A stretch of 64,000 nucleotides of DNA, from contig OZ038378.1 in NCBI GenBank assembly GCA_964036045.1, forward strand, positions 194,308,001-194,372,000. Reading direction: 5' to 3'. The notes below the pieces were generated by a model, which had not been told where the DNA came from, ran no database searches, and was given only the letters and a program-made list of their open reading frames with translations. The stretch comes from Eutreptiella sp. 'Long Island Sound 2002' (Eukaryota; Protista; Euglenida). Made by a program: the position numbers and the translations under genes. Positions 2,017 to 56,846 of the stretch are shown in pieces (position 1 is the stretch's first letter; every line of letters starts with the position of its first letter).

Positions 2017-3249
2017 ATGTCGACTCGCTCAGCCACGCATTCCATGGCCAGTGACCTCATGTTGGCACAAGAGTACTGTTTCTGGAGAGACAACTACGAG
2101 GTGGTGATTGTGAAGAATAGACGCCGAAAGTCGTCGCAGCGCACTGAGCTGGTGCAGTTGAATCGCGTCACCTCATGGGGCGCGTACCAAGCAAGCGTAA
2201 TCATGCACATGGCCCAGACCCCACAGAACGGCAGTCTGCACATCTTTCGCAAGGGAATCACCCCAGAGTACGACGATCCTTTGAATCGGAATGGCGGTCT
2301 CTTTAAGCTGACGTTTCAAGCCACAAGTTGTGCTGCGGATGCGTTCACAGCGCTGTGCGGTTCCTTCGTCCTGGGGCACCTCCCGAACCACGTGGCAGTG
2401 AATGGGGTAACATTTGCCAAAAAGGGGACGAGTTGTGGTCTGAAGGTGTGGGTTGGGAGCAGGGCCAAGCAGGTGGTGGCCCACGTTCAGGAGTGGTTCA
2501 CGAAAGAATTGGATGGCTTCATCTCGTCCTGTCTGTTCTGCCCCATTGTGTCGCTGCTGACCTCCATTCAGAAGAAGCAAGCTGCACTGTGTGTGCCACC
2601 ACAGCCCATCCAGCAACCACAAGGCCCAAACCCTAGAGACGCCATCGGGATCCTCAAGGTACCACCACCAGCCCCAGTGATGATGCCCGCAGTCACCACC
2701 GCAGGCAACATGGGAATCATCCCTTGGGACTTGGTGCAACAGCCGGATGTCGCTGGCAGCCCAAGCCTGTTTCTTCTCAACGAAGCATCGTTCTCGAGTG
2801 ATGGTAGCGACCCTGACACGGCTGCGTCTGGTAGATCCCTGGGATACAGCAGTCAGGCCTCCACTTCCGACGTCAATGACCGAGCACGCGATTCGCAGCT
2901 GTTGTCGCTGTCCCGAGACGAGTGTATACTGGAGCAGGCCGTTGAAGAATGTGTACAGGATGTCCAACAAATGGAGGCATCGGGTCCTCAGGTGCCTGCC
3001 GCGCTTTCAGTCGTCCACAATGTGTTTGAGGATGATGCCATGAGGTGCCTGATGAGCAGGTCTCGGTACTCACAAGCCTGGGCTGTAGAAGCAGCGGACG
3101 CCGTGAGAAAGCGGCTGCAAGCCACCGCAGAGCGGTGCCGTGCATTTCCTCGCGATTTTATGGAAGTGCGGGTCGTGCAAACCTCTCCGCAAGCCCCATG
3201 CCGTACATGCTCTGACGATTCTGACGAATGTATGGGCAGATGGGGATAG
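2017..3249 (+). CDS. Divergent eIF4E-family cap-binding protein with long C-terminal low-complexity extension (copy 1)
   Basis: Motifs YCFWRDN, HIFRKGITPEYDDPLNRNGGLF, DAFTALCGSFV, VNGVTFAKK and LKVWV align with the eIF4E pattern WxxW...LFKxGIxPxWEDxxNxxGGxW...W...ICG...IxIW. The track ORF starts at 1912, but a TAA closes that extension in copy 4, so 2017 (or 2044) is the likely start. Confidence 0.85.
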   Translation: MSTRSATHSMASDLMLAQEYCFWRDNYEVVIVKNRRRKSSQRTELVQLNRVTSWGAYQASVIMHMAQTPQNGSLHIFRKGITPEYDDPLNRNGGLFKLTFQATSCAADAFTALCGSFVLGHLPNHVAVNGVTFAKKGTSCGLKVWVGSRAKQVVAHVQEWFTKELDGFISSCLFCPIVSLLTSIQKKQAALCVPPQPIQQPQGPNPRDAIGILKVPPPAPVMMPAVTTAGNMGIIPWDLVQQPDVAGSPSLFLLNEASFSSDGSDPDTAASGRSLGYSSQASTSDVNDRARDSQLLSLSRDECILEQAVEECVQDVQQMEASGPQVPAALSVVHNVFEDDAMRCLMSRSRYSQAWAVEAADAVRKRLQATAERCRAFPRDFMEVRVVQTSPQAPCRTCSDDSDECMGRWG

Positions 3250-3285
3250 TGCAAATCAGCGATGGATTTAATTTTGGCGCTACTC

Positions 3286-3858
3286 GGGGGTCCGGGTCCG
3301 GGGCCGGGGGGGGGGGGGGGGGCGGTCAGTTTTTGTGACTGGTCACAAAAAACATACAGGGCCATAGTGAGAAAGTGCGGCCCCGAAAAAATATCGTGAC
3401 CAAAAAGGTTGTCTTCGGTAGAATGTCTCCTGCGTCTGGCTGTAGTGCAAATTGACCGTGACTGTGTCTGCTTGCACTTTTGCTCCTCCTTTGCATCTAT
3501 CAGTACCAGTTCATCTAGTGACAGTGGCAGCGATAGTGGCACTGGCAGCGACAGTGACAAGTGACAGTGATGGTAGCTGCAGGGAGCAAGACAATTTTGT
3601 CACTGTGAGTGATGATAGTGAATGACATTGAGACATTGAATGACATTGAATGACGTTAACAATGTTGCATCCACAGGGCCCTATGCTTATCATGAGTGCT
3701 GTTGCATCACCCCCCCCCCCCCACCCATGTACATGTATGGGCTGAGGGCTGCTCCAAACCCCTGGTTTTAGGTCACCTTTTTTTGTGACCAGATATTGTG
3801 ACCTTTTTCATGACCAAGGGGGGGGGGGTTGGTGAGGGGCCCCGGACCCCCCCCCCCC
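3286..3858. mobile_element. ~570-bp TIR element (GGGGGTCCGGG...CCCGGACCCCC) with subterminal GTGACC/GGTCAC motifs; copies ~26607-27176, ~41888-42526, ~56883-57479, truncated at ~18255-18295
   Basis: 11-bp terminal inverted match, a perfect hairpin TTTTTGTGAC-TG-GTCACAAAAA at 3330-3351, and mirrored GTGACC clusters near both ends. No TSD is visible. Confidence 0.55.
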
Positions 3859-4394
3859 AGTTAGATCCAACCCTGGTGCAAATGCGGCTGCAAGCCTGTG
3901 GGCATATATGGGCCTGTGGGCATGTGCTGCTTTGCATGAAGGGGGCAGGTTTGTGCCTGTGGCATCGCTTGGCTTGAGGTACTGTTACACAATGTATGCA
4001 TATCCTCTGTTGATGGCAACCACATGTTTCTCATGCATTGCAGGATGGCAATCCTTCCTTTTTGTGCACAAATGGTGCGAGACCACCATTGCTCCTGCAC
4101 TATGCAAGGGGGGCAGCCGGCATCCTATTTTGTGGATGTTCCATCTGCTTTTGGACCGTGGCCCTGCCCTGACTGCCAAGCAGAAACCCGCCAGTGACCC
4201 TGATCCTGTGGAACCTGAACCCTTAAGGGTTCCGTTACAACAGCACCCTCAGCCGCAGGCAGGACGCACAAGGGATGTCCCAACTGGGCACTAATTCCAC
4301 ACGGCATCCCCCAAGCAAAGGGCAGCCGGGAGGATGTGGCGCCGCATCCGTGACAAGGGGAGCGGTATGTCTGCATCAATGAGGTCTGGAACAC

Positions 4395-4988
4395 GGATTA
4401 TACCCCGACCAGTGGGTTGACTGCCAGAGTCACTCTGTTTTACAATAAAGGGCCTCCCTTTTCCTGCACTGAGCTGTAGACCAATACCGGTATCTTCTTG
4501 CATACACCTATAGATTTATGCATAGGCGTTTTACAAAGTTGCCCCTGCAATTCTTATCACATCCTTTACGGTCAGCAGTGTCTCCACACGAGGCTGGCAG
4601 CTGCAAGGGACACACAACATTTGCACAAGTACTGACGCTTTGGACGACCTTGCTTACACAAGCGATCCCACAAAATTTGTTGGCTGACGTCAAAACCTTT
4701 ACCAGCACCCCTCATGCCGCTTTCCTACAGGCACCATCCTGTATTGCAACACCCCCCAGCCACCCCCCTCGCCAGCCCCTACTGATGCACTCCTAGCATG
4801 TTTATCAGATATCCTACAACAAATGCAGCGGCTTCACGTACCCAGTGAATCGTGGTCTCAGGGCTGGGTATTTGCTATCCTCACAAGGGCATTGATTTTT
4901 CAAATGTCCCAGTTGTTTGTCCACGTTGACGATAATACTATTGTGGCTGCATCCCAGGCCCAGTTGCAAGCTGCCCTCTATACCGAGT
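4395..4988 (+). pseudogene. Decayed non-LTR retrotransposon (LINE) reverse transcriptase core, domains ~1-5
   Basis: Collinear motifs across stops and frameshifts: LTARVTLFYNKG (W..A.I..I.KKGD), RPIPVSS (YRPISL), FTKL..FL...LRSAVSPHEAGSCKGHTT (QAGFRKGRST), LLADVKTFTSTPH (D..KAFD), RGLRAGY (RG.RQGCPLSP) and LFVHVDDNTIVAASQAQLQAAL (YADD). Confidence 0.8.
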
Positions 4989-5700
4989 GCATGTTTTGGA
5001 CCCCCAAATATGAGCGCTGATTCTTGCACCGGAAAGGGCATTCCATCCCAAATAGGACACTATTCCGTGCAGTTTGCGTCTCGTCCCGCCCCATTGGCTC
5101 CACGAGGCATGTATCACAGCATGCGCCTGGAAGTACAGGACTGCCATGGATCAACGTGCCCGCCCTGTGTGCAACTGCAACAGGGCCTGTGGTTCTGATG
5201 TCACTGTCCCTTCCCTCCACAGGCCTTGCCATGCCTCAAATGCCCCTTACCCCGGGCCCGGGTGCCACCACACATGTCCCCCCCCCCCCCCCCAATGCCC
5301 CACCAACCATAACCGTCTTGAAACAAGCACATGGCTGTTGCATGGTTTGGAAGAGAAGGTCTGTCTGATCTGTGCGTTCGAACCTGATTGCGGTGGTGTT
5401 GATGGATCGCCTCGTTGGGCATATGGTTGAATGATGAAATGTTTGTGTCTGCTGGTCAACAAGCTTTTAAATTCAAGGGAACACATCTCATAGGAGGATG
5501 GCTGAAGAAGTGGAAGCAGCACACATCGGGAGAGCTCCGACTGGTGCACTGAACACAGGATTGATGCCCTCCTCCTCCTCCAATGCCAAAGGGAGAGGGG
5601 GCTTCCTTTGCATCTCAGTTTTGCTCCGTCACTGAGGATGACAAGTTGGCGCAGACCCCTTACCAAACTGTTAAATGCCGAAAACACACACAGTATATGC

Positions 5701-6193
5701 TTTTTACAAAGTTGCCCCTGCAATTCTTATAACATCCTTTATGGTCAGCAGTGTCTCCACACGAGGCTGGCAGCTGCAAGGGACACACAACATTTGCACA
5801 AGTACTGACGCTTTGGACGACCTTGCTTACACAAGCGATCCCACAATATGTGTGTATTTGTTGGCTGACGTCAAAGCCTTTACCAGCACCCCTCATGCCG
5901 CTTTCCTACAGGCACCATCCTGTATTGCAACACCCCCCAGCCACCCCCCTCGCCAGCCCCTACTGATGCACTCCTAGCATGTTTATCAGATATCCTACAA
6001 CAAATGCAGCGGCTTCACGTACCCAGTGAACCGTGGTCTCAGGGCTGGGTACTTCCTATCCCACGCCCCATTCGCTTTGGCGCGCCTCACAAGGGCATTG
6101 ATTTTTCAAACGTTACAGTTGTTTGTCCACGTTGACGATAATACTATTGTGGCTGCATCCCAGGCCCAGTTGCAAGCTGCCCTCTATACCGAG
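5701..6193 (+). pseudogene. Second RT relic (tandem duplicate, domains ~2-5)
   Basis: Duplicate of 4527-4988 at ~1.17-kb period, with LLADVKAFTSTPH, RGLRAGYFLSHAPF and FVHVDD. Confidence 0.8.
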
Positions 6194-6458
6194 TGCATGT
6201 TTTGGACCCCCAAATATGAGCTCTGATTCTTCTCACCCTCTACCTCTCCTCTGCTGCTGAATCATCTGAAAGGGACATTGCAATCCAATTGAAAACTGCT
6301 TCCTTCCCCTGCATCTGTGGGTTCAGTACCCTGCTCAGCTTTATGTGGTATGAAATGCACTTCAGCTTTCCCCACTGGGAAAGTGGACACTTGTGCAGTA
6401 CTGCAGGCTTTGCATCAAGGAGTTGTCATCCTTTACCTTCCCTTCATCGGCATATGTT

Positions 6459-15043: not shown

Positions 15044-16984
15044 AAACATTGCATATGCTAAAAAGCTAGGGCAACCGTTACCACCCCCCACCCCCCAACT
15101 GTGAGCACCAAAAGCGCTGAAAATGATGGAAACACCATCTCGCGCTCCAATTTTAAGCTGTCAACAAGAAGAGGTGCGTTCAAGAAAGTCCAAGAGCAGA
15201 TGTCAAGAAGTTGGGAAGCGAATGATGGGATGTTGCATGTAGTTTGGAACAACCATTGGAGCATGGACCCTATGCTCTTGGCCGTCCCAACGCGCCTCTT
15301 GTGGTATACAAACCCCTGAACAACCACCGTAGCAGCTAGAACCAACGGGAGGCCCGCGTGACCTTACATGCTATACCCTGACAACACCATCCTTTTTGTC
15401 CCTTGTACCTTCGATAACCCCACCAACAGGGGCATGGGGAAGGTCTCTCTTCAAGGTGCCTGGCCGAAGGCAATAGAACTTCTACAACCCCAGAGATCTA
15501 CACTACTTCTCTTACGGCACCTTTTTTCGGTGGTGGTGTGCACTGTAAGGAGTACAGCTTCATGCCTGGTCATGGCCGTACCCCCCCTCCCCCTTGCGCA
15601 AGCACGGCCTTGTCTAAGCACAGAGTGGTGAGACCAGTGATTTCCTGCCGGTGGGATACCTGGGGTGACGGCCATCGTCGGATTATGGCTAAGCATAGAG
15701 TGGGCGTTGAAACGCTGTTTTTAGGAACTTTTGGGACCACTGTTTTTGTCGTCCCAGATGTAAGATGGGGTTTAAAACCATTCTACCACACATTACAACC
15801 CGTGATTCTTAGCCAGTCCCGATATTCCCCTTCCACAGCCTGTCACCATCTGCATCTTCTGGAAATGGGCGGTCATGTGCGTTTGCCATCATGTGTGTCG
15901 CACGCGAGCATAGTGTTGTCTAAGCACCCGGTGGGCGTTGAACCGCTGTTTAGCCTGCTTTTTGGGACCACGGCTGTGCTTGCGCAGGGGGAGGGGGGTT
16001 ACATTCAACTAGAACCACTATCCTACAAGGCCTTTGGGTATTTGGCCTACAGTCTGTAATCCTGCTCCTTCGCGGGGCAATACATAGTTGATGGCTTAGC
16101 CGACATCAGTGGTCAGGGCTGTTTGCCACTCTAGCACGTGGCCCTGGTGCAGCCCTAGTGCAGCAAGGAATCCCCACTGTTCGGGACTGTATGATGCCAA
16201 TGTACAGGTCAAGCGTCAGATGATTGTGAAAATTGCACCACCTTGGAAAGCAGTTTTACGCTGCAGGTCTGTGGAACTTTCTGCGTTGGTTGCAGCCATG
16301 CATTGTTGCACATTGATGTGTTGTCCAATGTATCATGGGTCACACCACTAGGCACTTTGGAAGTGCACTCCAACCCTTTGACCGTGCACCCAATGAGGAA
16401 ATCATTGCACTGCAGTTGACAACCACCTTTCCTGGGCATTTCTCCAATATAAACCTGCAAGATCTGCCCCACCAAACTCAAGCCCCAACCTGCCCAAGAG
16501 CGAAATGCACACTTGAACAAGTACAGGAGATGGTGGCCGCTTTCAGCATATCCCTGAGTCCGAACCCAGATACAAGCCATGTTTTTTACGTGTTCGGGGG
16601 AGCGTTAGTGCGCCAGGCCCACGCCAGGCATCTTTTTTGACCCGTGCCCCACCGGTGACCTTTTAGGGGGTGCGCACTAAGTGCAGTGCGCGCGCAGTGC
16701 AACTATTTGGACGTCTAGCCATCCTAGAACCCCATACTTTGTGATACCTGCAAGATCTGCCCCACCAAACTCAAGCCCCAACCTGCTCAAGAGCCAAATG
16801 CACACTTGAACAAGTACAGGAGACAAGGAGACAGTGGCCGCTTTCAGCATATCCCTGAGGCAAACCCCGGATACAAGCAATGTTTTTTTCGTGTTGCATG
16901 CATTTGTGGGTTGAACGAAGTTGCTGCACAACATCTGCACATGTTGTCTCCAGTTCTCATAAAAGCTTATTTCTTGACGCACCG

Positions 16985-18217
16985 ATGTCGACTCGCTCAG
17001 CCACGCATTCCATGGCCAGTGACCTCATGTTGGCACAAGAGTACTGTTTCTGGAGAGACAACTACGAGGTGGTGATTGTGAAGAATAGACGCCGAAAGTC
17101 GTCGCAGCGCACTGAGCTGGTGCAGTTGAATCGCGTCACCTCATGGGGCGCGTACCAAGCAAGCGTAATCATGCACATGGCCCAGACCCCACAGAACGGC
17201 AGTCTGCACATCTTTCGCAAGGGAATCGCCCCAGAGTACGAAGATCCTTTGAATCGGAATGGCGGTCTCTTTAAGCTGACGTTTCAAGCCACAAGTTGTG
17301 CTGCGGATGCGTTCACAGTGCTGTGCGGTTCCTTCGTGCTGGGGCACCTCCCGAACCACGTGGCAGTGAATGGGGTAACATTTGCCAAAAAGGGGACGAG
17401 TTGTGGTCTGAAGGTGTGGGTTGGGAGCAGGGCCAAGCAGGTGGTGGCCCACGTTCAGGAGTGGTTCACGAAAGAATTGGATGGCTTCATCTCGTCCTGT
17501 CTGTTCTGCCCCATTGTGTCGCTGCTGACCTCCATTCAGAAGAAGCAAGCTGCACTGTGTGTGCCACCACAGCCCATCCAGCAACCACAAGGCCCAAACC
17601 CTAGAGACGCCATCGGGATCCTCAAGGTACCACCACCACCCCCAGTGATGATGCCCGCAGTCACCACCACAGGCAACATGGGAATCATCCCTTGGGACTT
17701 GGTGCAACAGCCGGATGTCGCTGGCAGCCCAAGCCTGTTTCTTCTCAACGAAGCATCGTTCTCGAGTGATGGTAGCGACCCTGACACGGCTGCGTCTGGT
17801 AGATCCCTGGGATACAGCAGTCAGGCCTCCACTTCCGACGTCAATGACCGAGCACGCGATTCGCAGCTGTTGTCGCTGTCCCGAGACGAGTGTATACTGG
17901 AGCAGGCCGTTGAAGAATGTGTACAGGATGTCCAACAAATGGAGGCATCGGGTCCTCAGGTGCCTGCCGCGCTTTCAGTCGTCCACAATGTGTTTGAGGA
18001 TGATGCCATGAGGTGCCTGATGAGCAGGTCTCGGTACTCACAAGCCTGGGCTGTAGAAGCAGCGGACGCCGTGAGAAAGCGGCTGCAAGCCACCGCAGAG
18101 CGGTGCCGTGCATTTCCTCGCGATTTTATGGAAGTGCGGGTCGTGCAAACCTCTCCGCAAGCCCCATGCCGTACATGCTCTGACGATTCTGACGAATGTA
18201 TGGGCAGATGGGGATAG
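16985..18217 (+). CDS. eIF4E-like protein copy 2 (GIAPEYEDPL allele)
   Basis: Intact 410-codon frame, near-identical to copy 1. Confidence 0.85.
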   Translation: MSTRSATHSMASDLMLAQEYCFWRDNYEVVIVKNRRRKSSQRTELVQLNRVTSWGAYQASVIMHMAQTPQNGSLHIFRKGIAPEYEDPLNRNGGLFKLTFQATSCAADAFTVLCGSFVLGHLPNHVAVNGVTFAKKGTSCGLKVWVGSRAKQVVAHVQEWFTKELDGFISSCLFCPIVSLLTSIQKKQAALCVPPQPIQQPQGPNPRDAIGILKVPPPPPVMMPAVTTTGNMGIIPWDLVQQPDVAGSPSLFLLNEASFSSDGSDPDTAASGRSLGYSSQASTSDVNDRARDSQLLSLSRDECILEQAVEECVQDVQQMEASGPQVPAALSVVHNVFEDDAMRCLMSRSRYSQAWAVEAADAVRKRLQATAERCRAFPRDFMEVRVVQTSPQAPCRTCSDDSDECMGRWG

Positions 18218-24300: not shown

Positions 24301-25336
24301 TGCTTTTTGGGACCACGGCTGTGCTTGCGCAGGGGGCGGGGGTTACATTCAACTAGAACCACTATCCTACAAGACCTTTGGGTATTTGGCCTACAGTCTG
24401 TAATCCTGCTCCTTCGCGGGGCAATACATAGTTGATGGCTTAGCCGACATCAGTGGTCAGGGCTGTTTGCCACTCTAGCACGCGGCCATGGTGCAGCCCT
24501 AGTGTAGCAAGGAATCCCCACTGTTCGGGACTGTATGATGCCAATGTACAGGTCAAGCGTCAGATGATTGTGAAAATTGCACCACCTTGGAAAGCAGTTT
24601 TACGCTGCAGGTCTGTGGAACTTTCTGCGTTGGTTGCAGCCATGCATTGTTGCACATTGGTGTGTTGTCCAATGTATCATGGGTCACACCACTAGGCACT
24701 TTGGAAGTGCACTCCAACCCTTTGACCGTGCACCCAATGAGGAAATCATTGCACTGCAGTTGACAACCACCTTTCCTGGGCATTTCTCCAATATAAACCT
24801 GCAAGATCTGCCCCACCAAACTCAAGCCCCAACCTGCCCAAGAGCGAAATGCACACTTGAACAAGTACAGGAGACAAGGAGACAGTGGCCGCTTTCAGCA
24901 TATCCCTGAGTCCGAACCCAGATACAAGCCATGTTTTTTATGTGTTCGGGGGAGCGTTAGTGCGCCAGGCCCACGCCAGGCATCTTTTTTGACCCGTGCC
25001 CCACCGGTGACCTTTTAGGGGGTGCGCACTAAGTGCAGTGCGCGCGCAGTGCAACTATTTGGACATCTAGCCATCCTAGAACCCCATACTTTGTGATACC
25101 TGCAAGATCTGCCCCACCAAACTCAAGCCCCAACCTGCTCAAGAGCCAAATGCACACTTGAACAAGTACAGGAGGCAAGGAGACAGTGGCCGCTTTCAGC
25201 ATATCCCTGAGGCAAACCCCAGATACAAGCAATGTTTTTTTCGTGTTGCATGCATTTGTGGGTTGAACGAAGTTGCTGCACAACATTTGCACATGTTGTC
25301 TCCAGTTCTCATAAGAGCTTATTTCTTGACGCACCG

Positions 25337-31155: not shown

Positions 31156-31648
31156 TTTTTACAAAGGTGCCCCTGCAATTCTTATAACATCCTTTACGGT
31201 CAGCAGTGTCTCCACACGAGGCGGGCAGCTGCAAGGGACACACAACATTTGCACAAGTACTGACGCTTTGGACGACCTTGCTTACACAAGCGATCCCACA
31301 ATATGTGTGTATTTGTTGGCTGACGTCAAAGCCTTTACCAGCACCCCTCATGCCGCTTTCCTACAGGCACCATCCTGTATTGCAACACCCCCCAGCCACC
31401 CCCCTCGCCAGCCCCTACTGATGCACTCCTAGCATGTTTATCAGATATCCTACAACAAATGCAGCGGCTTCACGTACCCAGTGAACCGTGGTCTCAGGGC
31501 TGGGTACTTCCTATCCCACGCCCCATTCGCTTTGGCGCGCCTCACAAGGGCATTGATTTTTCAAACGTTACAGTTGTTTGTCCACGTTGACGACAATACT
31601 ATTGTGGCTGCATCCCAGGCCCAGTTGCAAGCTGCCCTCTATACTGAG
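31156..31648 (+). pseudogene. RT relic, copy 3c (third tandem repeat, found only in array copy 3)
   Basis: Near-identical to 5701-6193. Confidence 0.8.
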
Positions 31649-34279
31649 TGCATGTTTTGGACCCCCAAATATGAGCTCTGATTCTTCTCACCCTCTACCT
31701 CTCCTCTGCTGCTGAATCATCTGAAAGGGACATTGCAATCCAATTGAAAACTGCTTCCTTCCCCTGCATCTGTGGGATCAGTATCCTGCTCAGCTTTGTG
31801 TGGTATGAAATGCACTTCAGCTTTCCCCACTGGGAAAGTGGACACTTGTGCAGTACTGCAGGCTTTGCATCAAGGAGTTGTCATGCTTTACCTTCCCTTC
31901 ATCGGCATATGTTGGGGCGAGTCCGCGGGTGCTAGGACACCAACTACCCCTGCCGCCCCCACCTGCCCAACCCCCCCCCCCCCCCTGGCGCTTTTGGCCA
32001 GGCGCCTTTGGCCAACAGTTAGTGAAATAAGCCCTTTTTGAGCCCATTGCAAGCCATTTTGGCCACTCCAAAGTCACAAAACGCCTTGAAAATGGGCTGT
32101 TTTGGGACCAAAAATCAGTCAAAAATGGATCAAAAATGTGCTTTTCCAAAGATATATTTGGACCACTTGGGGTGCCTAAACAAGTGGAATGAGCCCATTT
32201 TCAGACCATGATGAACCATTTTGGCCCCTCTCAAGGCCGAAAGGGCCTTGAATATGGGCCAATCTGGGACCACAAATGGCTCAAAAACAGGTCAAAACCA
32301 TGGTTTTCCAAAAATAATCCTAGTCCAGTTGTGGTGCCCAAACGGATGAACACAGCTCGTTTTGAGCCCCTTTTGAGCTGCTCTCATCCACTTTCCAGTG
32401 CGTACCTCATTTGTCGTTGAAGTCTCCTAGACGATGTTCCATCCCCCACCAGCTCGGTCCCAATATTCAATCCTGGTATGGTTAGAGAGAGGGCAAGGGG
32501 AGGTAAGGGGAGCCTGTGATGGACCAACGCTTGGCCTTGGGGGCATGTACCCCCCAAATTGCCCCACCTGGACCCCCCTCCCCCAACCAACCCTCCCGGA
32601 CTCCCCCGCTCTTGGGCAAAAGCCTCCCCAGATCCCCCCTTCCCTAGCCGCCCCCCCCCCCCCCCCCAGGGGGCCTCCTACCAACGGTTAGTTGGGGGGG
32701 TAGTTGGCATCCAGAACCGAGGGGTCCCCCCCCAGGTCAATATGGGTGGCAAAGTGGTGGTGTAGCTGTAATTCCATGTCCTCTTGTGTTCTGGGGTGTA
32801 TGCTGGCCTGTTGCTTTGTATTGTCATGTTTTGAGGCTCGGGTTGGCTTATGTTTGCAACATGTGTTCTGTGTTACATGCCTCGTGGTAACACGGGCTGG
32901 TCCAAACACGGCGACCCCATGTTTCCGCATTTTTGCCCATTGAACAAGGACCCGACCTGTGTTAGGACAGTGGGTGACACTTGTGCATGGCCAGAATTGA
33001 CTGGGTTATCATGAGGGCCCCCATGTGCCTTGACCATAAAAACCACCCAGCTCCCCCCTTGGGCCGAAATCCCAACCCCCACCCCCCAATCCCTTGAAGG
33101 TTTACCAACCTGTGTCACAATTGCAATTGCCCTGCATGCATGCCATGCATGCCTGCCTGTGTTTGGCAAAACGCTCAGACTTTACAATGTATCCTCCCAT
33201 TCCGCCCCCCCCAAAAAAATATTAAAGCTAACAGAATTGCCCCCCCTCCCCACGCCCCAGCAATCATTCTGCCAGCTTGCCGGGGTTTGTTGTGGCCCTC
33301 AGTCCCCATGTACTGTTGAATTTAGGTTAGAGGTCTTGGCGGACACCAGCGCCAGACTGTACATACGCAGATGTTTGACATTGATCTGAATCATCAGTGG
33401 AACTGCCGAACATTGCTGTATATGCATACCAGGACGTGCATGTGTGGAGCGCTTTGTTGACCTGCATGCGGCCCCTGCCCCAGCCGGAATGGACAATCAT
33501 GCGCCCCCACCCCAGCCCCCCAAACAATATTCCCCTCCCCCCGGCCCGGAGCGGACAACCATGGCCCGGCCATTTTCGACCAAATCTTGGACCAAATCTT
33601 TTCTGCTCCAAGAGCACACTGGGAAGCCCACGGGCGTGGTGGTTCCTGCTGCATAACCTGGAGTCAGAGCCAGATCAGACTAGCGCAAGTGATGTTCCAC
33701 CCCCCTCCCCCCCCACCATCGTTTTCAAAGCACCTCTTCACCTTGACAACCCTAGAATGGTGCATTTCTGCAAACTGCAAATTGTCATTTACTGCGTTAA
33801 ATGATTGGTTTCCAGTGCGCACCTTCTCTGGTCTGTAATCCATTCAATGAGCCAGAAACTGTTTCTTCTGTCATTCCTGGGGTGCATAGTTTCTCTTCAT
33901 TTCCATTGACATGCAAGTGTGCAGGCTCTTTGCAGGATTGTAATTCCACAACGTGCGTCAGAGCTTCCTCCACCTGTCAGTCCATTGTCGGGATGGTTCT
34001 GTGGGGAGTGAGTGAGCTCTTATATTATTTTTATTATTCTTATTGTCAGAAGTATAAGAATAATAATTACATGACATGGAGGCGTGCAGCAGACCCAATG
34101 ACCAGAGAGCACAATGGGCAATCAAACGCCCACGCACATGGGGGACATAACCCCACCAGGGACGCCAGGAAAGTTTTTCCCGGTTTTCTCATGACAGAAA
34201 TTTTCCACATCAACAGATTTCATTTCACGGGGGGGCCGCCTTATCTTATGCCATATTTGTCAGGGTATGAAGCCTGCCC

Positions 34280-40618: not shown

Positions 40619-41851
40619 ATGTCGACTCGCTCAGCCACGCATTCCATGGCCAGTGACCTCATGTTGGCACAAGAGTACTGTTTCTGGAGAGACAACTACG
40701 AGGTGGTGATTGTGAAGAATAGACGCCGAAAGTCGTCGCAGCGCACTGAGCTGGTGCAGTTGAATCGCGTCACCTCATGGGGCGCGTACCAAGCAAGCGT
40801 AATCATGCACATGGCCCAGACCCCACAGAACGGCAGTCTGCACATCTTTCGCAAGGGAATCGCCCCAGAGTACGACGATCCTTTGAATCGGAATGGCGGT
40901 CTCTTTAAGCTGACGTTTCAAGCCACAAGTTGTGCTGCGGATGCGTTCACAGCGCTGTGCGGTTCCTTCGTCCTGGGGCACCTCCTGAACCACGTGGCAG
41001 TGAATGGGGTAACATTTGCCAAAAAGGGGACGAGTTGTGGTCTGAAGGTGTGGGTTGGGAGCAGGGCCAAGCAGGTGGTGGCCCACGTTCAGGAGTGGTT
41101 CACGAAAGAATTGGATGGCTTCATCTTGTCCTGTGTGTTCTGCCCCATTGTGTCGCTGCTGACCTCCATTCAGAAGAAGCAAGCTGCACTGTGTGTGCCA
41201 CCACAGCCCATCCAGCAACCACAAGGCCCAAACCCTAGAGACGCCATCGGGATCCTCAAGGTACCACCACCACCCCCAGTGATGATGCCCGCAGTCACCA
41301 CCACAGGCAACATGGGAATCATCCCTTGGGACTTGGTGCAACAGCCGGATGTCGCTGGCAGCCCAAGCCTGTTTCTTCTCAACGAAGCATCGTTCTCGAG
41401 TGATGGTAGCGACCCTGACACGGCTGCGTCTGGTAGATCCCTGGGATACAGCAGTCAGGCCTCCACTTCCGACGTCAATGACCGAGCACGCGATTCGCAG
41501 CTGTTGTCGCTGTCCCGAGACGAGTGTATACTGGAGCAGGCCGTTGAAGAATGTGTACAGGATGTCCAACAAATGGAGGCATCGGGTCCTCAGGTGCCTG
41601 CCGCGCTTTCAGTCGTCCACAATGTGTTTCAGGATGATGCCATGAGGTGCTTGATGAGCAGGTCTCGGTACTCACAAGCCTGGGCTGTAGAAGCAGCGGA
41701 CGCCGTGAGAAAGCGGCTGCAAGCCACCGCAGAGCGGTGTCGTGCATTTCCTCGCGATTTTATGGAAGTGCGGGTCGTGCAAACCTCTCCGCAAGCCCCA
41801 TGCCGTACATGCTCTGACGATTCTGACGAATGTATGGGCAGATGGGGATAG
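40619..41851 (+). CDS. eIF4E-like protein copy 4 (GIAPEYDDPL allele)
   Basis: Intact frame with several private amino-acid changes (HLLNH, FILSCVF, FQDD). Confidence 0.85.
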   Translation: MSTRSATHSMASDLMLAQEYCFWRDNYEVVIVKNRRRKSSQRTELVQLNRVTSWGAYQASVIMHMAQTPQNGSLHIFRKGIAPEYDDPLNRNGGLFKLTFQATSCAADAFTALCGSFVLGHLLNHVAVNGVTFAKKGTSCGLKVWVGSRAKQVVAHVQEWFTKELDGFILSCVFCPIVSLLTSIQKKQAALCVPPQPIQQPQGPNPRDAIGILKVPPPPPVMMPAVTTTGNMGIIPWDLVQQPDVAGSPSLFLLNEASFSSDGSDPDTAASGRSLGYSSQASTSDVNDRARDSQLLSLSRDECILEQAVEECVQDVQQMEASGPQVPAALSVVHNVFQDDAMRCLMSRSRYSQAWAVEAADAVRKRLQATAERCRAFPRDFMEVRVVQTSPQAPCRTCSDDSDECMGRWG

Positions 41852-43064: not shown

Positions 43065-43670
43065 ATTATACCCCGACCAGTGGGTTGACTGCCAGAGTCA
43101 CTCTGTTTTACAATAAAGGGCCTCCCTTTTCCTGCACTGAGCTGTAGACCAATACCGGTATCTTCTTGCATACACCTATAGATTTATGCATAGGCGTTTT
43201 ACAAAGTTGCCCCTGCAATTCTTATCACATCCTTTACGGTCAGCAGTGTCTCCACACGAGGCTGGCAGCTGCAAGGGACACACAACATTTGCACAAGTAC
43301 TGACGCTTTGGACGACCTTGCTTACACAAGCGATCCCACAAAATTTGTTGGCTGATGTCAAAACCTTTACGAGCACCCCTCATGCCGCTTTCCTACAGGC
43401 ACCATCCTGTATTGCAACACCCCCCAGCCACCCCCCTCGCCAGCCCCTACTGATGCACTCCTAGCATGTTTATCAGATATCCTACAACAAATGCAGCGGC
43501 TTCACATACCCAGTGAATCGTGGTCTCAGGGCTGGGTACTTCCTATCCTTCAATTTGGCACGCCTCACAAGGACATTGATTTTTCAAACGTTACAGTTGT
43601 TTGTCCACGTTGACGATAATACTATTGTGGCTGCATCCCAGGCCCAGTTGCAAGCTGCCCTCTATACCGA
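43065..43670 (+). pseudogene. RT relic, copy 4a
   Basis: Near-identical to 4395-4988. Confidence 0.8.
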
Positions 43671-44385
43671 GTGCATGTTTTGGACCCCCAAATATGAGCG
43701 CTGATTCTTGCACCGGAAAGGACATTCCATCCCAAATAGGACACTATTCCGTGCAGTTTGCTTCTCGTTCCGCCCCATTGGCTCCACGAGGCATGTATCA
43801 CAGCATGCGCCTGGAAGTACAGGACTGCCATGGATCAACGTGCCCGCCCTGTGTGCAACTGCAACAGGGCCTGTGGTTCTGATGTCACTGTCCCTTCCCT
43901 CCACAGGCCTTGCCATGCCTCAAATGCCCCTTACCCCGGGCCCGGGTGCCACCACACATGTCCCCCCCTCCCCCCCCAATGCCCCACCAAACATAACCGT
44001 CTTGAAACAAGCACATGGCTGTTGCATGGTTTGGAAGAGAAGGTCTGTCTGATCTGTGCGTTCGAACCTGATTGCGGTGGTGTTGATGGATCGCCTCGTT
44101 GGGCATATGGTTGAATGATGAAATGTTTGTGTCTGCTGGTCAACAAGCTTTTAAATTCAAGGGAACACATCTCATAGGAGGATGGCTGAAGAAGTGGAAG
44201 CAGCACATATCGGGAGAGCTCCGACTGGTGCACTGAACACAGGATTGATGCCCTCCTCCTCCTCCAATGCCAAAGGGAGAGGGGGCTTCCTTTGCATCTC
44301 AGTTTTACTCCGTCACTGAAGATGACAAGTTGGCGCAGACCCCTTACCAAACTGTTAAATGCCGAAAACACACACAGTATATGCT

Positions 44386-44928
44386 TTTTACAAAGTTGCC
44401 CGTGGAATGTCCGTGGAATGTGAAACGAAGCGTCTCATGTCTTGGTGCAGGGTGTAGGGCTGGGGCAGGCAGAACATCCTTTACGGTCAGCACTGTCTCC
44501 ACACGAGGCTGGCAGCTGCAAGGGACACACAGCATTTGCACAAGTACTGACGCTTTGGACGACCTTGCTTACACAAGCGATCCCACAATATGTGTGTATT
44601 TGTTGGCTGACGTCAAAGCCTTTACCAGCACCCCTCATGCCGCTTTCCTACAGGCACCATCCTGTATTGCAACACCCCCCAGCCACCCCCCTCGCCAGCC
44701 CCTACTGATGCACTCCTAGCATGTTTATCAGATATCCTACAACAAATGCAGCGGCTTCACATACCCAGTGAACCGTGGTCTGGGTACTTCCTATCCCACG
44801 CCCCATTCGCTTTGGCGCGCCTCACAAGGGCATTGATTTTTCAAACGTTACAGTTGTTTGTCCACGTTGACGACAATACTATTGTGGCTGCATCCCAGGC
44901 CCAGTTGCAAGCTGCCCTCTATACTGAG
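44386..44928 (+). pseudogene. RT relic, copy 4b, interrupted by ~70 bp of filler at 44402-44472
   Basis: Near-identical to 5701-6193 apart from the filler. Confidence 0.78.
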
Positions 44929-47589
44929 TGCATGTTTTGGACCCCCAAATATGAGCTCTGATTCTTCTCACCCTCTACCTCTCCTCTGCTGCTGAATCAT
45001 CTGAAAGGGACATTGCAATCCAATTGAAAACTGCTTCCTTCCCCTGCATCTGTGGGATCAGTATCCTGCTTAGCTTTGTGTGGTATGAAATGCACTTCAG
45101 CTTTCCCCACTGGGAAAGTGGACACTTGTGCAGTACTGCAGGCTTTGCATCAAGGAGTTGTCATGCTTTACCTTCCCTTCATCGGCATATGTTGGGGCGA
45201 GTCCGCGGGTGCTAGGACACCAACTACCCCTGCCGCCCCCACCTGCCCAACCCCCCCCCCCCCTGGCGCTTTTGGCCAGGCGCCTTTGGCCAACAGTTGG
45301 GGTGCCTAAACAAGTGGAATGAGCCCATTTTCAGACCATGATGAACCATTTTGGCCCCTCTCAAGGCCGAAAGGGCCTTGAATATGGGCCAATCTGGGAC
45401 CACAAATGGCTCAAAAACAGGTCAAAACCATGGTTTTCCAAAAATAATCCTAGTCCAGTTGTGGTGCCCAAACGGATGAACACAGCTCGTTTTGAGCCCC
45501 TTTTGAGCTGCTCTCATCCACTTTCCAGTGCGTACCTCATTTGTCGTTGAAGTCTCCTAGACGATGTTCCTTCCCCCACCAGCTCGGTCCCAATATTCAA
45601 TCCTAGTATGGTTAGAGAGAGGGCAAGGGGAGGTAAGGGGAGCCTGTGATGGACCAACGCTTGGCCTTGGGGGCATGTACCCCCCAAATTGCCCCACCTG
45701 GACCCCCCTCCCCCAACCAACCCTCCCGGACTCCCCCGCCCTTGGGCAAAAGCCTCCCCAGATCCCCCCTTCCCTAGCCGCCCCCCCCCCCCCAGGGGGC
45801 CTCCTACCAACGGTTAGTTGGGGGGGTAGTTGGCATCCAGAACCGAGGGGTCCCCCCCCCAGGTCAATATGGGTGGCAAAGTGGTGGTGTAGCTGTAATT
45901 CCATGTCCTCTTGTGTTCTGGGGTGCATGCTGGCCTGTTGCTTTGTATTGTCATGTTTTGAGGCTCGGGTTGGCTTATGTTTGCAACATGTGTTCTGTGT
46001 TACATGCCTCGTGGTAACACGGGCTGGTCCAAACACGGCGACCCCATGTTTCCGCATTTTTGCCCATTGAACTAGGACCCGACCTGTGTTAGGACAGTGG
46101 GTGACACTTGTGCATGGCCAGAATTGACTGGGTTATCATGAGGGCCCCCATGTGCCTTGACCACAAATACCACCCAGCTCCCCCCTTGGGCTGAAATCCC
46201 AACCCCCACCCCCCAATCCCTTGAAGGTTTACCAACCTGTGTCACAATTGCAATTGCCCTGCATGCATGCCATGCATGCCTGCCTGTGTTTTGCAAAACG
46301 TTCAGACTTTACAATGTATCCTCCCATTCCCCCCCCCCCAAAAAAAATATTAAAGCTAACAGAATTGCCCCCCCTCCCCACGCCCCAGCAATCATTCTGC
46401 CAGCTTGCCGGGGTTTGTTGTGGCCCTCAGTCCCCATGTACTGTTGAATTTAGGTTAGAGGTCTTGGCGGACACCAGCGCCAGACTGTACATACGCAGAT
46501 GTTTGACATTGATCTGAATCATCAGTGGAACTGCCGAACATTGCTGTATATGCATACCAGGACGTGCATGTGTGGAGCGCTTTGTTGACCTGCATGCGGC
46601 CCCTGCCCCAGCCGGAATGGACAATCATGCGCCCCCACCCCAGCCCCCCAAACAATATTCCCCTCCCCCCGGCCCGGAGTGGACAACCATGGCCCGGCCA
46701 TTTTGGACCAAATCTTGGACCAAATCTTTTCTGCTCCAAGAGCACACTGGGAAGCCCACGGGCGTGGTGGTTCCTGCTGCATAACCTGGAGTCAGAGCCA
46801 GATCAGACTAGCGCAAGTGATGTTCCACCCCCCTCCCCCCCCACCATCGTTTTCAAAGCACCTCTTCACCTTGACAACCCTAGAATGGTGCATTTCTGCA
46901 AACTGCAAATTGTCATTTACTGCGTTAAATGATTGGTTTCCAGTGCGCACCTTCTCTGGTCTGTAATCCATTCAATGAGCCAGAAACTGTTTCTTCTGTC
47001 ATTCCTGGGGTGCATAGTTTCTCTTCATTTCCATTGACATGCAAGTGTGCAGGCTCTTTGCAGGATTGTAATTCCACAACGTGCGCCAGAGCTTCCTCCA
47101 CCTGTCAGTCCATTGTCGGGATGGTTCTGTGGGGAGTGAGTGAGCTCTTATATTATTTTTATTATTCTTATTGTTAGAATTATAAGAATGATAATTACAT
47201 GACATGGAGGCGTGCAGCCCTTTACACCCTTGTGCTCTGCACACATGCTACTGCCAAGCCCGTTGCTGAGGCTGCTTGTGCTGAACCCTCAGTCAAGGTG
47301 CAACCAAACCTGCCGCCAGGGTCGCAGGCAAGTCTGCAGCCAAGCCTGTGGCTGGAGAGCCCATTCTGATGGCCCCTGTTGAGCATGTGCAGCTCTTCAA
47401 AGTTGAGTTCTAGCACCAGAAAAGGTGGCACCCAGTGCCTGTCTCTCTGTAGACCTGAACACTCTTCCCAATAAAACATTTCCTGGTCATTTTCTGGATC
47501 ATATGCCGTCCATGTATGCATGTCTTGCTGCATGTCACAGGTCCTTTGGAGTTCCCCTAGGGAGACGGGGGGGTTGTCACTTTGGCTAC

Positions 47590-52551: not shown

Positions 52552-52800
52552 TTGGATTCCGAATACCTGTAGAAAGGCATAACGGAATGGTCGGTGAAAT
52601 GGCACCGACACGGGTGGCGGGTTAAGAATAGGGAGGTGGGGCACAAGGACTTGTGGGAACAGATTTTTCTGCTACGGCGGGAGGCGGGGTCGCTGTTGCA
52701 GTTGGTGTGGACGCCTTCCCATATGCAGGTAGTGGGAAATGATAGGGCAGATGCATTGGCAGAGGAGGGCCGGCATCAACATCCACATAATACAAAACGG
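52552..52800 (+). pseudogene. RNase HI C-terminal half (retroelement-type), 5'-truncated with an in-frame stop
   Basis: LDSEYL*KGITEWSVKWHRHGWR..VGHKDLWEQI..LQLVWTPSH..GNDRADALA matches the RNase HI motifs DSxY, WxxxGW, NxDLW, WxxxH and GNExADxLA. Confidence 0.85.
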
Positions 52801-54427
52801 AGGTCGGAGGAGCCGAGGCCGCCACTGTTGTGGGAGGAGGTGGGGCTGCTTCCCATGCGATCCGATGTATCGCCCTCGGCAGGGGGGGGGGGGTCGACAA
52901 AGCCCCCCGTTTCAGCCGGAGCGAGGTCAAGTGTCAGGGGCTCGTTAGCGTTGTCAGAGGGGTCACACACGTCGACGGATTCCTCCACGGCAGATTGGGT
53001 GAGTGAGTCCAGTGATGGAGGGTCGGGCTTCAGCACAGACGTCAGTGATCGACAGCGGGAGCGCAAAAGAGCGAGGGGAGCAGCATAGCATAGTTGGGCG
53101 TGTGCAGCTCTTCGATTTTTCAGAGGGCGGTTTGAACCCCGGGGAGGGCTGGGAACCGCTGAACGTCCCGCAGCCCCAAGGGATGTTTATTTTATGGTCG
53201 CGCATGGAAGGTGAGTGGTGAGCATACGAGAAAGTGCACGGGGGCCGGGCCCCGCAGTGCGCTCCGTCGTCGCGGCTCGTGGAGGCCACGGCGCCGACGA
53301 TCATGAACAGATGCTGCTTCTATGCGGCCACTGTAGATAAGGTGGCAGCAATGATGCAGACAGTGGGGTGTAGGGGGGTGGGGTGGATGGCGGTTAGTTA
53401 ACCACATCGCTAGCGTAGTATACTGGCAGTGCACGGGGGCCTCGTCACGGAGAGCGTAGGATGGATGCCCGGCGTGTAGATCATGGCACCGACGGGCAGA
53501 CCCCTGAGCGCGGCTTCGCCGCTCCAGCTAGTGATTTCCTGCGGGTGGGATACCGGGGGTGACGGCCATCGTCGGATTATGGCTAAGCACAGAGTGGGCG
53601 TTGAAACGCTGTTTTTAGGAAATTTTGGGACCACTGTTTTTGTCGTCCCAGATGTAAGATGGGGTTTAAAACCATTCTACCACACATTGCAACCCGTGAT
53701 TCTTAGCCAGTCCCGATATTCCCCTTCCACAGGCTGTCACTATCTGCATCTTCTGGAAATGGGCGGTCATGTGCGTTTGCCATCCTGTGTGTTGCACGCG
53801 AGCATAGTGTTGTCTAAGCACCTGGTGGGCGTTGAACCGCTGTTTTGTCTGGTTTTTTGGGACCACGGCTGTGCTTGCGCAGGGGGAGGGGGGTTACATT
53901 CAACTAGAACCAGTATCCTACAAGACCTTTGGGTATTTGGCCTACAATCTATAATCCTGCTCCTTCGCAGGACAATACATAGTTGATGGCTTAGCGGACA
54001 TCACTGCTCAGGGCTGTTTGCCACTCTAGCACGCGGCCCTGGTGCAGCCCTAGTGCAGCAAGGAAACCCCACTGTTCGGGACTGTATGATGCCAATGTAC
54101 AGGTCAAGCGTCAGATGATTGTGGAAATTGCACCACCTTGGAAAGCAGTTTTACGCTGCAGGTCTGTGGAACTTTCTGCGTTGGTTGCAGCCATGCATTG
54201 TTGCACATTGGTGTGTTGTCCAATGTATCATGGGTCACACCACTAGGCACTTTGGAAGTGCACTCCAACCCTTTGACCGTGCACCCAATCAGGAAATCAT
54301 CGCACTGCAGTTGACAACCACCTTTCCTGGGCATTTCTCCAATATAAACCTGCAAGATCTGCCAAGAAGTGCACTGCAACCCTCTGCCCCACCAAACTCA
54401 AGCCCCAACCTGCCCAAGAGCGAAATG

Positions 54428-54960
54428 GAAAGAAAAAGAGAAGAGGAGAGAAAGAGAAGGGGAGAGCAAGAGAGAATGGAAGGGAGAGAGTAGGAGAGAG
54501 ACCCACAGAGCGAGAGACCGGGGCTAACCGGCGCAAAGGGAGGTGGTGGGTTCGAGCTGACCAGGGTTCGAGCTGATCAGGGTGGGTTCGAGCTGACCAA
54601 GGTAAAAGGGACGCCACGGCGGCACGGAACAGCCGAGAAATGTCAAGAAATGAAAAAGCAGGGCGCCGTAGCGCCCCTGAGCCACTGGCTCGACACGTTG
54701 TCACGTGTTGAACAGCCGAAGCAAGACTGGGGCGGCGAGAGTGCGGCCCAAGTGAGGATGACGGAAGCAAGTAGGCATGAATGTGTAGGCGGCATGCGCA
54801 TGCATGGTGGGGAGCTGAAAAGGTATGCGCCACACGCCACACGGCGACCATGACACGTCCTCACGAGCCAGAATGCAAGTGCATGACAGGGTCACGACCT
54901 GCAGGGCAAGGGTTAGAGACTAACCGGCACTGTGGGTGGGTGGTGGGTGCGAGCTGACCT
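54428..54960. repeat. Unique insertion with a purine tract, 3x GGGTTCGAGCTGAYCA and diverged ~50-bp direct repeats at its ends
   Basis: GA-rich 54428-54500; 16-mers at 54548, 54564 and 54584 and a variant at 54945. CTAACCGGC..GGTGGTGGGT(T/G)CGAGCTGACC occurs at both 54520-54562 and 54918-54959. Confidence 0.75.
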
Positions 54961-55613
54961 AAATGTCCAGAGGACCAGTGCCTATGCACAGTCAGCAACC
55001 ACCTGGTGTGGTACAGAACTGGTCTACGATGCAGTGCAGCAAGCAAAACACTGAACAATGTGGTTATGACCATGCGCCTGTGACACGGGGGCGTATGCGA
55101 GCCCAGTTTCCGTTGCCTCATGGCCAAGAGCGAAATGCACACTTGAACAAGTACAGGAGACAGTGGCCGCTTTCAGCATCCCTGAGGCAGAACCCAGATA
55201 CAAGCGATGTTTTTTACGTGTTGGGGGGAGCGTTAGTGCGCCAGGCCCACGCCAGGCATCTTTTTTGACCCGTGCCCCACCGGTGACCTTTTAGGGGGTG
55301 CGCACTAAGTGCAGTGCGCGCGCAGTGCAACTATTTGGACGTCTAGCCATCCTAGAACCCCATACTTTGTGATACCTGCAAGATCTGCCCCACCAAACTC
55401 AAGCCCCAACCTGCTCAAGAGCCAAATGCACACTTGAGACAAGTACAGGAGACAAGGAGACAGTGGCCGCTTTCAGCATATCCCTGAGGCAAACCCCAGA
55501 TACAAGCAATGTTTTTTTCGTGTTGCATGCAATTGTGGGTTGAACGAAGTTGCTGCACAACATTTGCACATGTTGTCTCCAGTTCTCATAAGAGCTTATT
55601 TCTTGACGCACCG

Positions 55614-56846
55614 ATGTCGACTCGCTCAGCCACGCATTCCATGGCCAGTGACCTCATGTTGGCACAAGAGTACTGTTTCTGGAGAGACAACTACGAGGTG
55701 GTGATTGTGAAGAATAGACGCCGAAAGTCGTCGCAGCGCACTGAGCTGGTGCAGTTGAATCGCATCACCTCATGGGGTGCGTACCAAGCAAGCGTAATCA
55801 TGCACATGGCCCAGACCCCACAGAACGGCAGTCTGCACATCTTTCGCAAGGGAATCGCCCCAGAGTACGACGATCCTGTGAATCGGAATGGCGGTCTCTT
55901 TAAGCTGACGTTTCAAGCCACAAGTTGTGCTGCGGATGCGTTCACAGCGCTGTGCGGTTCCTTCGTCCTGGGGCACCTCCCGAACCACGTGGCAGTGAAT
56001 GGGGTAACATTTGCCAAAAAGGGGACGAGTTGTGGTCTGAAGGTGTGGGTTGGGAGCAGGGCCAAGCAGGTGGTGGCCCACGTTCAGGAGTGGTTCACGA
56101 AAGAATTGGATGGCTTCATCTCGTCCTGTCTGTTCTGCCCCATTGTGTCGCTGCTGACCTCCATTCAGAAGAAGCAAGCTGCACTGTGTGTGCCACCACA
56201 GCCCATCCAGCAACCACAAGGCCCAAACCCTAGAGACGCCATCGGGATCCTCAAGGTACCACCACCACCCCCAGTGATGATACCCGCAGTCACCACCGCA
56301 GGCAACATGGGAATCATCCCTTGGGACTTGGTGCAACAGCCGGATGTCGCTGGCAGCCCAAGCCTGTTTCTTCTCAACGAAGCATCGTTCTCGAGTGATG
56401 GTAGCGACCCTGACACGGCTGCGTCTGGTAGATCCCTGGGATACAGCAGTCAGGCCTCCACTTCCGACGTCAATGACCGAGCACGCGATTCGCAGCTGTT
56501 GTCGCTGTCCCGAGACGAGTGTATACTGGAGCAGGCCGTTGAAGAATGTGTACAGGATGTCCAACAAATGGAGGCATCGGGTCCTCAGGTGCCTGCCGCG
56601 CTTTCAGTCGTCCACAATGTGTTTGAGGATGATGCCATGAGGTGCTTGATGAGCAGGTCTCGGTACTCACAAGCCTGGGCTGTAGAAGCAGCGGACGCCG
56701 TGAGAAAGCGGCTGCAAGCCACCGCAGAGCGGTGCCGTGCATTTCCTCGCGATTTTATGGAAGTGCGGGTCGTGCAAACCTCTCCGCAAGCCCCATGCCG
56801 TACATGCTCTGACGATTCTGACGAATGTATGGGCAGATGGGGATAG
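55614..56846 (+). CDS. eIF4E-like protein copy 5 (GIAPEYDDPV allele)
   Basis: Intact frame with private changes RITSW, DDPV and MIP. Confidence 0.85.
   Translation: MSTRSATHSMASDLMLAQEYCFWRDNYEVVIVKNRRRKSSQRTELVQLNRITSWGAYQASVIMHMAQTPQNGSLHIFRKGIAPEYDDPVNRNGGLFKLTFQATSCAADAFTALCGSFVLGHLPNHVAVNGVTFAKKGTSCGLKVWVGSRAKQVVAHVQEWFTKELDGFISSCLFCPIVSLLTSIQKKQAALCVPPQPIQQPQGPNPRDAIGILKVPPPPPVMIPAVTTAGNMGIIPWDLVQQPDVAGSPSLFLLNEASFSSDGSDPDTAASGRSLGYSSQASTSDVNDRARDSQLLSLSRDECILEQAVEECVQDVQQMEASGPQVPAALSVVHNVFEDDAMRCLMSRSRYSQAWAVEAADAVRKRLQATAERCRAFPRDFMEVRVVQTSPQAPCRTCSDDSDECMGRWG

Follow-up and report, generated by a model that had tools for sequence, protein, structure and literature searches.

We analysed a 64,000-nucleotide (nt) stretch of the genome of the euglenid Eutreptiella sp. 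'Long Island Sound 2002' (GenBank assembly GCA_964036045.1, contig OZ038378.1, positions 194,308,001 to 194,372,000 of the forward strand; hereafter the window), in which an intronless gene of the eIF4E family is repeated head to tail. We think it probable that each repeat unit carries one functional, transcribed copy of this divergent gene, that the array extends to at least 12 copies, and that the encoded protein, to judge from its predicted pocket, binds the mRNA cap or leader in an altered way. On the evidence of its domain the array protein is a divergent member of the known eIF4E family and not a new kind of system.

Results

Five intact open reading frames (ORFs) of 1233 nt each lie on the + strand of the window at 2017-3249, 16985-18217, 25337-26569, 40619-41851 and 55614-56846, with stops at the last of these positions, and each encodes a protein of 410 amino acids (aa). 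Copy 1 (P0001) comprises an eIF4E-like domain, a disordered linker and a conserved tail; copies 3 and 4 are P0023 and P0022, and copy 5 was called as a 445-aa form, P0017. The five products are 98-99% identical to each other, and the start-to-start distances are 14968, 8352, 15282 and 14995 nt. Self-comparison of the window revealed that entire units of 8-15 kb, together with their spacers, are repeated head to tail at 96-99% identity, the units being distinguishable from one another by large insertions, internal 1.2-kb repeats, private substitutions and an inverted 423-nt segment. Each unit holds one gene copy, as counted in the assembly and not from read depth. Together, the ORFs, product identity, spacing and unit structure confirmed the five-copy tandem amplification described in the original prediction, although the number five applies to the window and the array is bigger. 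The coding sequence (CDS) of copy 1 matches the 2.525-Mb ENA contig ctg10908 exactly at 2347861-2349093, and that contig encodes no fewer than 12 distinct, intact 410-aa variants from the 90%-identity cluster of the array protein, of which about five lie in the window. ATG 2017 is the start in most paralogues and ATG 2044 serves where it has been lost; ATG 1912, which would give the 445-aa form, was rejected as a start as it is unconserved in paralogues.

The domain of copy 1 spans residues 10-190 (2044-2586, + strand), as delimited by Pfam, AlphaFold2 (AF2), Foldseek and column mapping. Pfam IF4E (PF01652) matches residues 16-165 over profile positions 2-148 of 158 with an E value of 4.6e-13 and 49.7 bits, against a gathering cut-off of 28.7. 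The AF2 model of the domain, built from a 64-sequence alignment, has a predicted local distance difference test score (pLDDT) of 94.6 and a predicted template modelling score (pTM) of 0.89, and the Protein Data Bank (PDB) matches shown by Foldseek are eIF4E/4EHP entries (probability 1.00, template modelling score 0.62-0.78). The model thus predicts the cupped-hand alpha/beta fold of the eIF4E family, and the assignment of an eIF4E-like domain is borne out by both profile and predicted structure. The full-length AF2 model was poor (pLDDT 47).

Word-based protein searches, using either the full protein or the domain alone, returned matches solely to paralogues of the same assembly. An exhaustive profile search recovered 235 relatives, including sequences from other species, and the query's nearest relatives share its layout of an IF4E domain at the N-terminus and a long C-terminal extension. 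In a 117-row tree of domain sequences, from which kinetoplastid EIF4E1-6 were left out, the array family forms one 46-row clade with the named euglenids Eutreptiella braarudii, Euglena mutabilis, Euglena gracilis (EG_transcript_5210), Jenningsia fusiforme, Rhabdomonas costata and Entosiphon sulcatum (Shimodaira-Hasegawa-like approximate likelihood ratio test, SH-aLRT, 98). The array family itself comprises 10 rows with support 100 and sits on a long stem of 0.74 adjoining the Eutreptiella P0026/27/31 group. Among the rows outside the clade are another E. braarudii eIF4E (P0096) and one sequence each from a kinetoplastid (Papus), a diplonemid (Namystynia) and a rhizarian. Instead of falling in an ordinary single-copy clade, the gene is thus placed in a euglenid-only one.

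In the alignment this clade is marked by a Tyr at W102 (human eIF4E numbering is used for family positions throughout), mostly by an Asp at E103, by a 'GGHFK' or 'GGLFK' strand and by the long C-terminal extension. The array protein has the Tyr at W102 and an IF4E domain with a motif-bearing tail, and it is monophyletic with the euglenid sequences. As placed by the tree, the array family is a lineage-specific, fast-evolving Eutreptiella offshoot of a euglenid-specific eIF4E clade, and the W102Y pocket and the tail are, by their distribution, ancient euglenid-wide features and not peculiarities of the array. The sampled species suggest that the clade is euglenid-wide and vertically inherited as far as the named members show. 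No description of this tailed clade was found in the literature searched. A second eIF4E type expressed by E. braarudii, P0096, falls with the 71 relatives that all keep W102; because of this second type, the array gene is unlikely to be the sole or housekeeping eIF4E, in agreement with the earlier view that it is not a housekeeping factor.

We then mapped the cap pocket using the clade profile aligned to 4EHP/eIF4E chains, the intermediate sequence P0026, column counts and the secondary structure of the model; columns were counted over the 10 rows of the array family, 36 rows of the rest of the clade and 71 rows outside it. W102 corresponds to Y85 in 10/10 array-family rows and is Y in 33/36 other clade rows, giving Y in 43 of the 46 clade rows versus W in 71/71 outside. 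The neighbouring E103 is D or E86 in the array family, acidic in 7/10 rows and Asn in the other three; at codons 85-86 (window 2269-2274) copies 2 and 3 have Y-E, whereas copies 1, 4 and 5 have Y-D, and both residues occur at position 86 across the euglenid clade (D 21, E 7). W166 corresponds to W145, which is W in all rows, so that Y85 and W145 are both invariant in 10/10 paralogues, and R157 corresponds to K136, present in 9/10. At R112 the array family has L95 (H in 32/36 other clade rows), and at K162 it has G141, with a lysine, K143, two residues further. W43 is replaced by Y20, W113 by F96 and W130 by F110, and W46 is retained as W23. Taken over the eight conserved eIF4E Trp positions (W43, W46, W56, W73, W102, W113, W130 and W166), Trp is found at two (W46 and W166) and an aromatic residue at six (Y20, W23, Y85, F96, F110 and W145), with none at W56 (Q41) or W73 (Q58).

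The S1-S2 loop that bears W56 is replaced by a predicted rigid beta-hairpin arm (residues 26-44; 2092-2148, + strand) with the tip V32-K-N-R-R-R37, built by extended strands 1 and 2 (15-31 and 38-53 in the model). The stretch that links the W46 position with the following helix is 29-30 residues long, has a median of 8 Lys/Arg and is free of aromatic residues after Y27. No aromatic is present from E28 to S53, the nearest being the conserved Y27, whose position is W in 26/36 other clade rows. Helix alpha-1 starts with the dorsal motif T52-S-W-G-A-Y-Q58 (2173-2193, + strand; model helix 54-66), and because the helix begins at W54, this residue is the equivalent of V69, and Q58 that of W73. The intermediate P0026 reads TSWEQFW here, and W73 is still W in 17/36 other clade members. 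By this alignment the dorsal eIF4G/4E-BP site is strongly altered in the array protein (V69 to W, W73 to Q). The original prediction had anticipated much of this pattern, and W43 to Y, the lack of an aromatic in the W56 loop, W102 to Y and R112 to L were all recovered. Two of its claims stood in part: a basic residue is kept at R157 but K162 is not, and the altered dorsal motif, given as TSWGAY, had been read one residue out of register.

The conserved C-terminal tail covers residues 345-410 (3049-3246, + strand) in the tail alignment. Its last ~65 residues follow the pattern LMxxSR[YS]xxxW, then an RL[QRE][AT]Txx[RK]C helix and a terminal aromatic-Gly, and this pattern is common to Eutreptiella-type and Euglena-type clade members. 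There was no Pfam match in the tail and an Atlas feature search of it gave no usable match; a canonical YxxxxL-hydrophobic motif, for which the tail was inspected by eye, is unconserved.

A sister gene of the P0026 type is present in the same genome (copies P0173-P0175), where the 462-aa P0173 is identical at 461/462 positions to the E. braarudii MMETSP0811 product. A match this close indicates that the DNA comes from E. braarudii itself or from a very close strain. It is sister to the array gene on the tree and has the same architecture and tail motif, the Y at W102 and the L at R112, and it is likewise intronless and tandemly arrayed, with at least 5 copies at 8.2-8.6 kb spacing (loci L009-L012; ENA ctg9020 and ctg8190); amplification is therefore not special to the array gene. 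In contrast to the array protein, the P0026-type protein keeps W at W73 (TSWEQFW), and the two have only 36-38% domain identity. A conserved 113-aa ORF follows each copy of the sister gene.

To assess intactness, the CDSs of the five window copies were aligned over 1233 nt from ATG 2017, giving 17 variable sites and 0 indels. In the aligned flanks, 2.5-5.4% of sites are variable and indel events number 9-17 per kb. At a flank rate of about 10 per kb, the ORF alignment should contain some 12 indels; it has none, which upholds the earlier observation of intact ORFs amid indel-rich flanks. We also compared the array gene with P0002-P0010, paralogues that are dispersed over the same assembly at 44-86% identity. 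Between paralogues, the ratio of non-synonymous to synonymous substitution rates (dN/dS) is 0.19-0.43 in the IF4E domain (up to 0.63 in pairs with P0004), 0.54-0.84 in the Pro/Ser-rich linker and 0.24-0.58 in the last 80 residues. By these ratios the paralogues of the array gene are under purifying selection, which is visible between dispersed loci.

Of the sampled words of the stretch, 47-69% are present in four estuarine metatranscriptome studies. RNA contigs of two metatranscriptome runs (X4 and X6) span 1931/1996-3282 at ≥99% identity and also cover 3335-4900, whereas no RNA contig in these runs covers 900-1570, which serves as an internal silent control. The array gene is thus transcribed and maintained intact, and as part of the overall explanation given above we judge that it is probably functional.

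Discussion

Several known eIF4Es resemble the array protein in part. One euglenozoan parallel is kinetoplastid group 3 (EIF4E5 and EIF4E6): EIF4E5 has Y and EIF4E6 has F at W102, the S1-S2 region is extended, to 19 residues in TcEIF4E5, and a non-aromatic His occupies W73 in TbEIF4E6 (PMC6582342, PMC5750579). TcEIF4E5 stacks the cap between W33 and Y83 (PMC6582342). However, at 182-219 aa the proteins of this group are small and lack a C-terminal tail, whereas the array protein has 410 aa and is tailed, and they keep an aromatic at W56 (W33 in TcEIF4E5, Y/F in EIF4E6) where the array protein has none. A comparison of the clade profile with the PDB gave no EIF4E5 or EIF4E6 chain at E ≤ 0.01. 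The array protein thus shares W102 to Y with group 3 and differs in size, tail and W56 aromatic, being set apart by these features and not by a joint tree.

Classes II and III do not fit either. 4EHP/eIF4E2 (class II: W43 to Y/F/L, W56 to Y/F, W102 kept) has the W43 to Y replacement in common with the array protein, and human 4EHP is the best solved-structure match of both the clade profile (5nvk, E 9.4e-17) and the model (5nvm). Class II has its own Y/F at W56, keeps W102 and W73 (PMC3388326) and has no long tail, whereas the array protein has Q, Y and Q at the three positions; without an aromatic at the W56 position, the label '4EHP-like' does not apply in the class II sense. Mammalian eIF4E3 (class III: W43 kept, W56 to C/Y) lacks the W56 aromatic and yet binds the cap through S1-S2 aliphatic and backbone contacts, and the mouse protein binds it with no S1-S2 aromatic (both as summarised in PMC6582342). 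The clade profile matches the eIF4E3 chain 4b6u (E 6.8e-12), but class III keeps W43 and W102, at which the array protein has Y (with Q at W56), and has no basic beta-arm, tail or amplification. Trypanosomatid EIF4E3 and EIF4E4 are, like the array protein, long eIF4Es (349-447 aa) of trans-splicing euglenozoans with an extension carrying partner-binding motifs (PMC5750579); their extension, however, is N-terminal and not C-terminal, and they keep W102 and W73.

In the mechanism that we favour, the 5' cap would still be gripped by a half-sandwich made up of Y85, acidic residue 86, W145 (contacting the N7-methyl group) and K136 (contacting the phosphates), while the basic arm would contact phosphates or the first leader nucleotides. 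Binding would have changed affinity or specificity, and a partner would be recruited via the tail instead of the canonical eIF4G site. The array would supply dosage, a role that such arrays of genes have in other protists with trans-splicing. The equivalents of Y85, acidic 86, W145 and K136 in known eIF4Es stack, hydrogen-bond and sense the methylated guanine and phosphates (PMC5750579). It is because these residues are retained, and by analogy with TcEIF4E5, mouse eIF4E3 and TbEIF4E6 (the last with His at the W73 position; PMC5750579), that we favour cap or leader binding of altered specificity. Since a trimethylguanosine cap has been reported on the spliced leader of Euglena (PMC3388326), altered specificity is plausible, if unproven. 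It is tempting to speculate that euglenids have their own eIF4E class that reads the trimethylguanosine leader cap by a one-aromatic pocket, in which the arm replaces the second Trp in the array family and the tail recruits a euglenid-specific partner, the array family being a high-dosage specialised or repressive paralogue; this wider scheme we regard as doubtful.

A number of observations weigh against cap binding by a selected, transcribed gene. Three canonical cap contacts are lost (W56, R112 and K162), and cap binding by the array protein may, from its residues, be weak or absent. Y27 or an arm arginine may or may not reach Y85, and Y27 may reach the pocket. Within the window the five copies differ by 13 non-synonymous versus 4 synonymous substitutions, and because pairwise dN/dS is 0.6-1.5 at this shallow depth, purifying selection on the amino-acid sequence is undetectable within the array; the case for constraint is argued solely by the absence of indels and stops and by the comparisons between paralogues. 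Finally, the RNA contigs also cover 3335-4900 downstream, so that the limits of the transcript may not be those of the gene, and as assembled contigs they are silent on the 5' end, spliced leader, strand and expression level.

The lost contacts are central to the main rival explanation, which we consider unlikely: the protein would not bind the cap at all and would act through its tail and dorsal face as a scaffold, a sequestering protein or a decoy, for example by titrating the partner of a parental clade member, with the copy number providing a stoichiometric excess. Besides the missing W56, R112 and K162 equivalents, a decoy would fit the Q at W73, the long stem (0.74) that follows duplication from a P0026-type gene, which keeps W73, and the conservation of the tail. 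However, Y85 and W145 are invariant, K136 is kept in 9/10 paralogues and residue 86 is acidic in 7/10, and these residues would have little reason to persist besides a cap-like ligand; in addition, the domain dN/dS of 0.2-0.4 is below that of the linker. Alternatively, the copies could be young, functionless duplicates drifting neutrally, or an assembly artefact that inflates one gene. The dN/dS of about 1 among the five window copies and their divergence of only ~1.4% are what such an origin would produce, and the contig depths of run X1, which have no single-copy baseline, leave copy number uncalibrated. We nevertheless consider it very improbable, given that the ~12 indel events predicted from flank density were not seen in the ORFs, that all of the at least 12 variants are intact and that independent studies of environmental RNA contain transcripts. 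Nor would a collapsed or duplicated assembly make the large insertions, the inversion and the private substitutions between units.

That the gene travels as cargo or passenger of a mobile element, either a Pack-type DNA transposon or a retroposed copy, so that its copies reflect element activity, appears improbable to us. At least 7 contigs carry dispersed intronless paralogues, next to a PiggyBac-type DDE ORF and a reverse transcriptase ORF, and conservation among close paralogues reaches ~240 nt into the 5' flank and ~300 nt into the 3' flank, as a mobile unit would predict. The window copies, in contrast, arose by duplication of whole 8-15 kb units with their spacers and not by insertion; the 67-nt repeat arm described below lies beside the gene upstream only, never downstream; and distant paralogues have the CDS alone in common. 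No spliced-leader remnant was found in the window, in which the E. gracilis-type spliced-leader 20-mer has no match at ≤3 mismatches (no search for a poly(A) tract was made). The euglenid-wide, apparently vertical distribution of the clade among its named members likewise speaks against such cargo.

The translation of leader-capped mRNAs in euglenids is an essentially unstudied subject, on which the literature searched gave the trimethyl leader cap (PMC3388326) and a mention, with nothing further, of two EIF4E1-like proteins in E. gracilis (PMC5862402). The euglenid-wide clade with its fixed W102Y pocket and tail is a concrete candidate for lineage-specific cap recognition, and the array family shows the extent to which pocket and eIF4G site can diverge in a gene still under selection. 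The window also provides a clean case of tandem amplification of a translation-factor gene in a euglenid genome.

Flanking sequences and other features of the window

The upstream flank of copy 1 (1778-2016, + strand) is 82-90% identical among paralogous loci and contains a T-run and pyrimidine-AG sites that are candidate trans-splice acceptors. A 71-nt direct repeat (1557-1627 and 1858-1928, 86% identical) lies upstream of every copy and flanks a very-high-copy element. In run X1 the contig depth at this element (1557-1928) is ~1e5 versus a few hundred nearby; the RNA runs contain the element as well, and 1654, 1707-1713 and 1779 are frequent break points of contigs. A T-run followed by CG at 1915-1925 was considered as a leader 3' end, which would have indicated a retrogene with leader, and was dropped as it lies within the 71-nt direct repeat and is not itself conserved as a leader end. 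Directly after the stop codon of copy 1, a 429-nt insertion (3257-3685, + strand) is absent from the environmental JGI contig L006 and from one X1 contig, and the close paralogue loci L003-L005 are without the whole of 3257-3875.

The description of the surroundings as transposon debris, made in the original prediction, holds in part: high-copy repeats and one sub-threshold RNase H relic are present, but the debris is weakly documented, with no other Pfam match in the window. The relic is an ORF at 52594-53088 (+ strand) with a weak match to the RNase H C-terminal part (E 3.8e-4, 21.1 bits, below the 25.8 cut-off), and from this match it is probably a retroelement remnant in the long spacer of unit 4. 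Among 20 other ORFs of the window, no Pfam family scored above cut-off, the sub-threshold matches being the RNase H fragment and DUF6542. Inside every gene copy there is a 265-aa antisense ORF with a TTG start (2173-2970, - strand, in copy 1), most likely a by-product of sense-frame composition. A 392-aa ORF (L008 6533-7711) with a faint cyclophilin (Pro_isomerase) match lies ~2.3-3.5 kb upstream of copy 1, in window ~1-230 and before.

The inverted 423-nt segment lies upstream of the gene (1130-1552 compared with 16097-16519 and 24441-24863), in one orientation in units 1 and 4 and in the other in units 2 and 3. It is bounded by a 67-nt repeat (1130-1196 and 1778-1844, 94% complementary in unit 1), and the inversion looks like recombination between inverted repeats. 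Downstream of the gene, most units contain runs of a tandem repeat of ~1.0-1.25 kb (4425-6411, 28682-31866, 43093-45146 and 58046-59822), the number of repeats varying from unit to unit.

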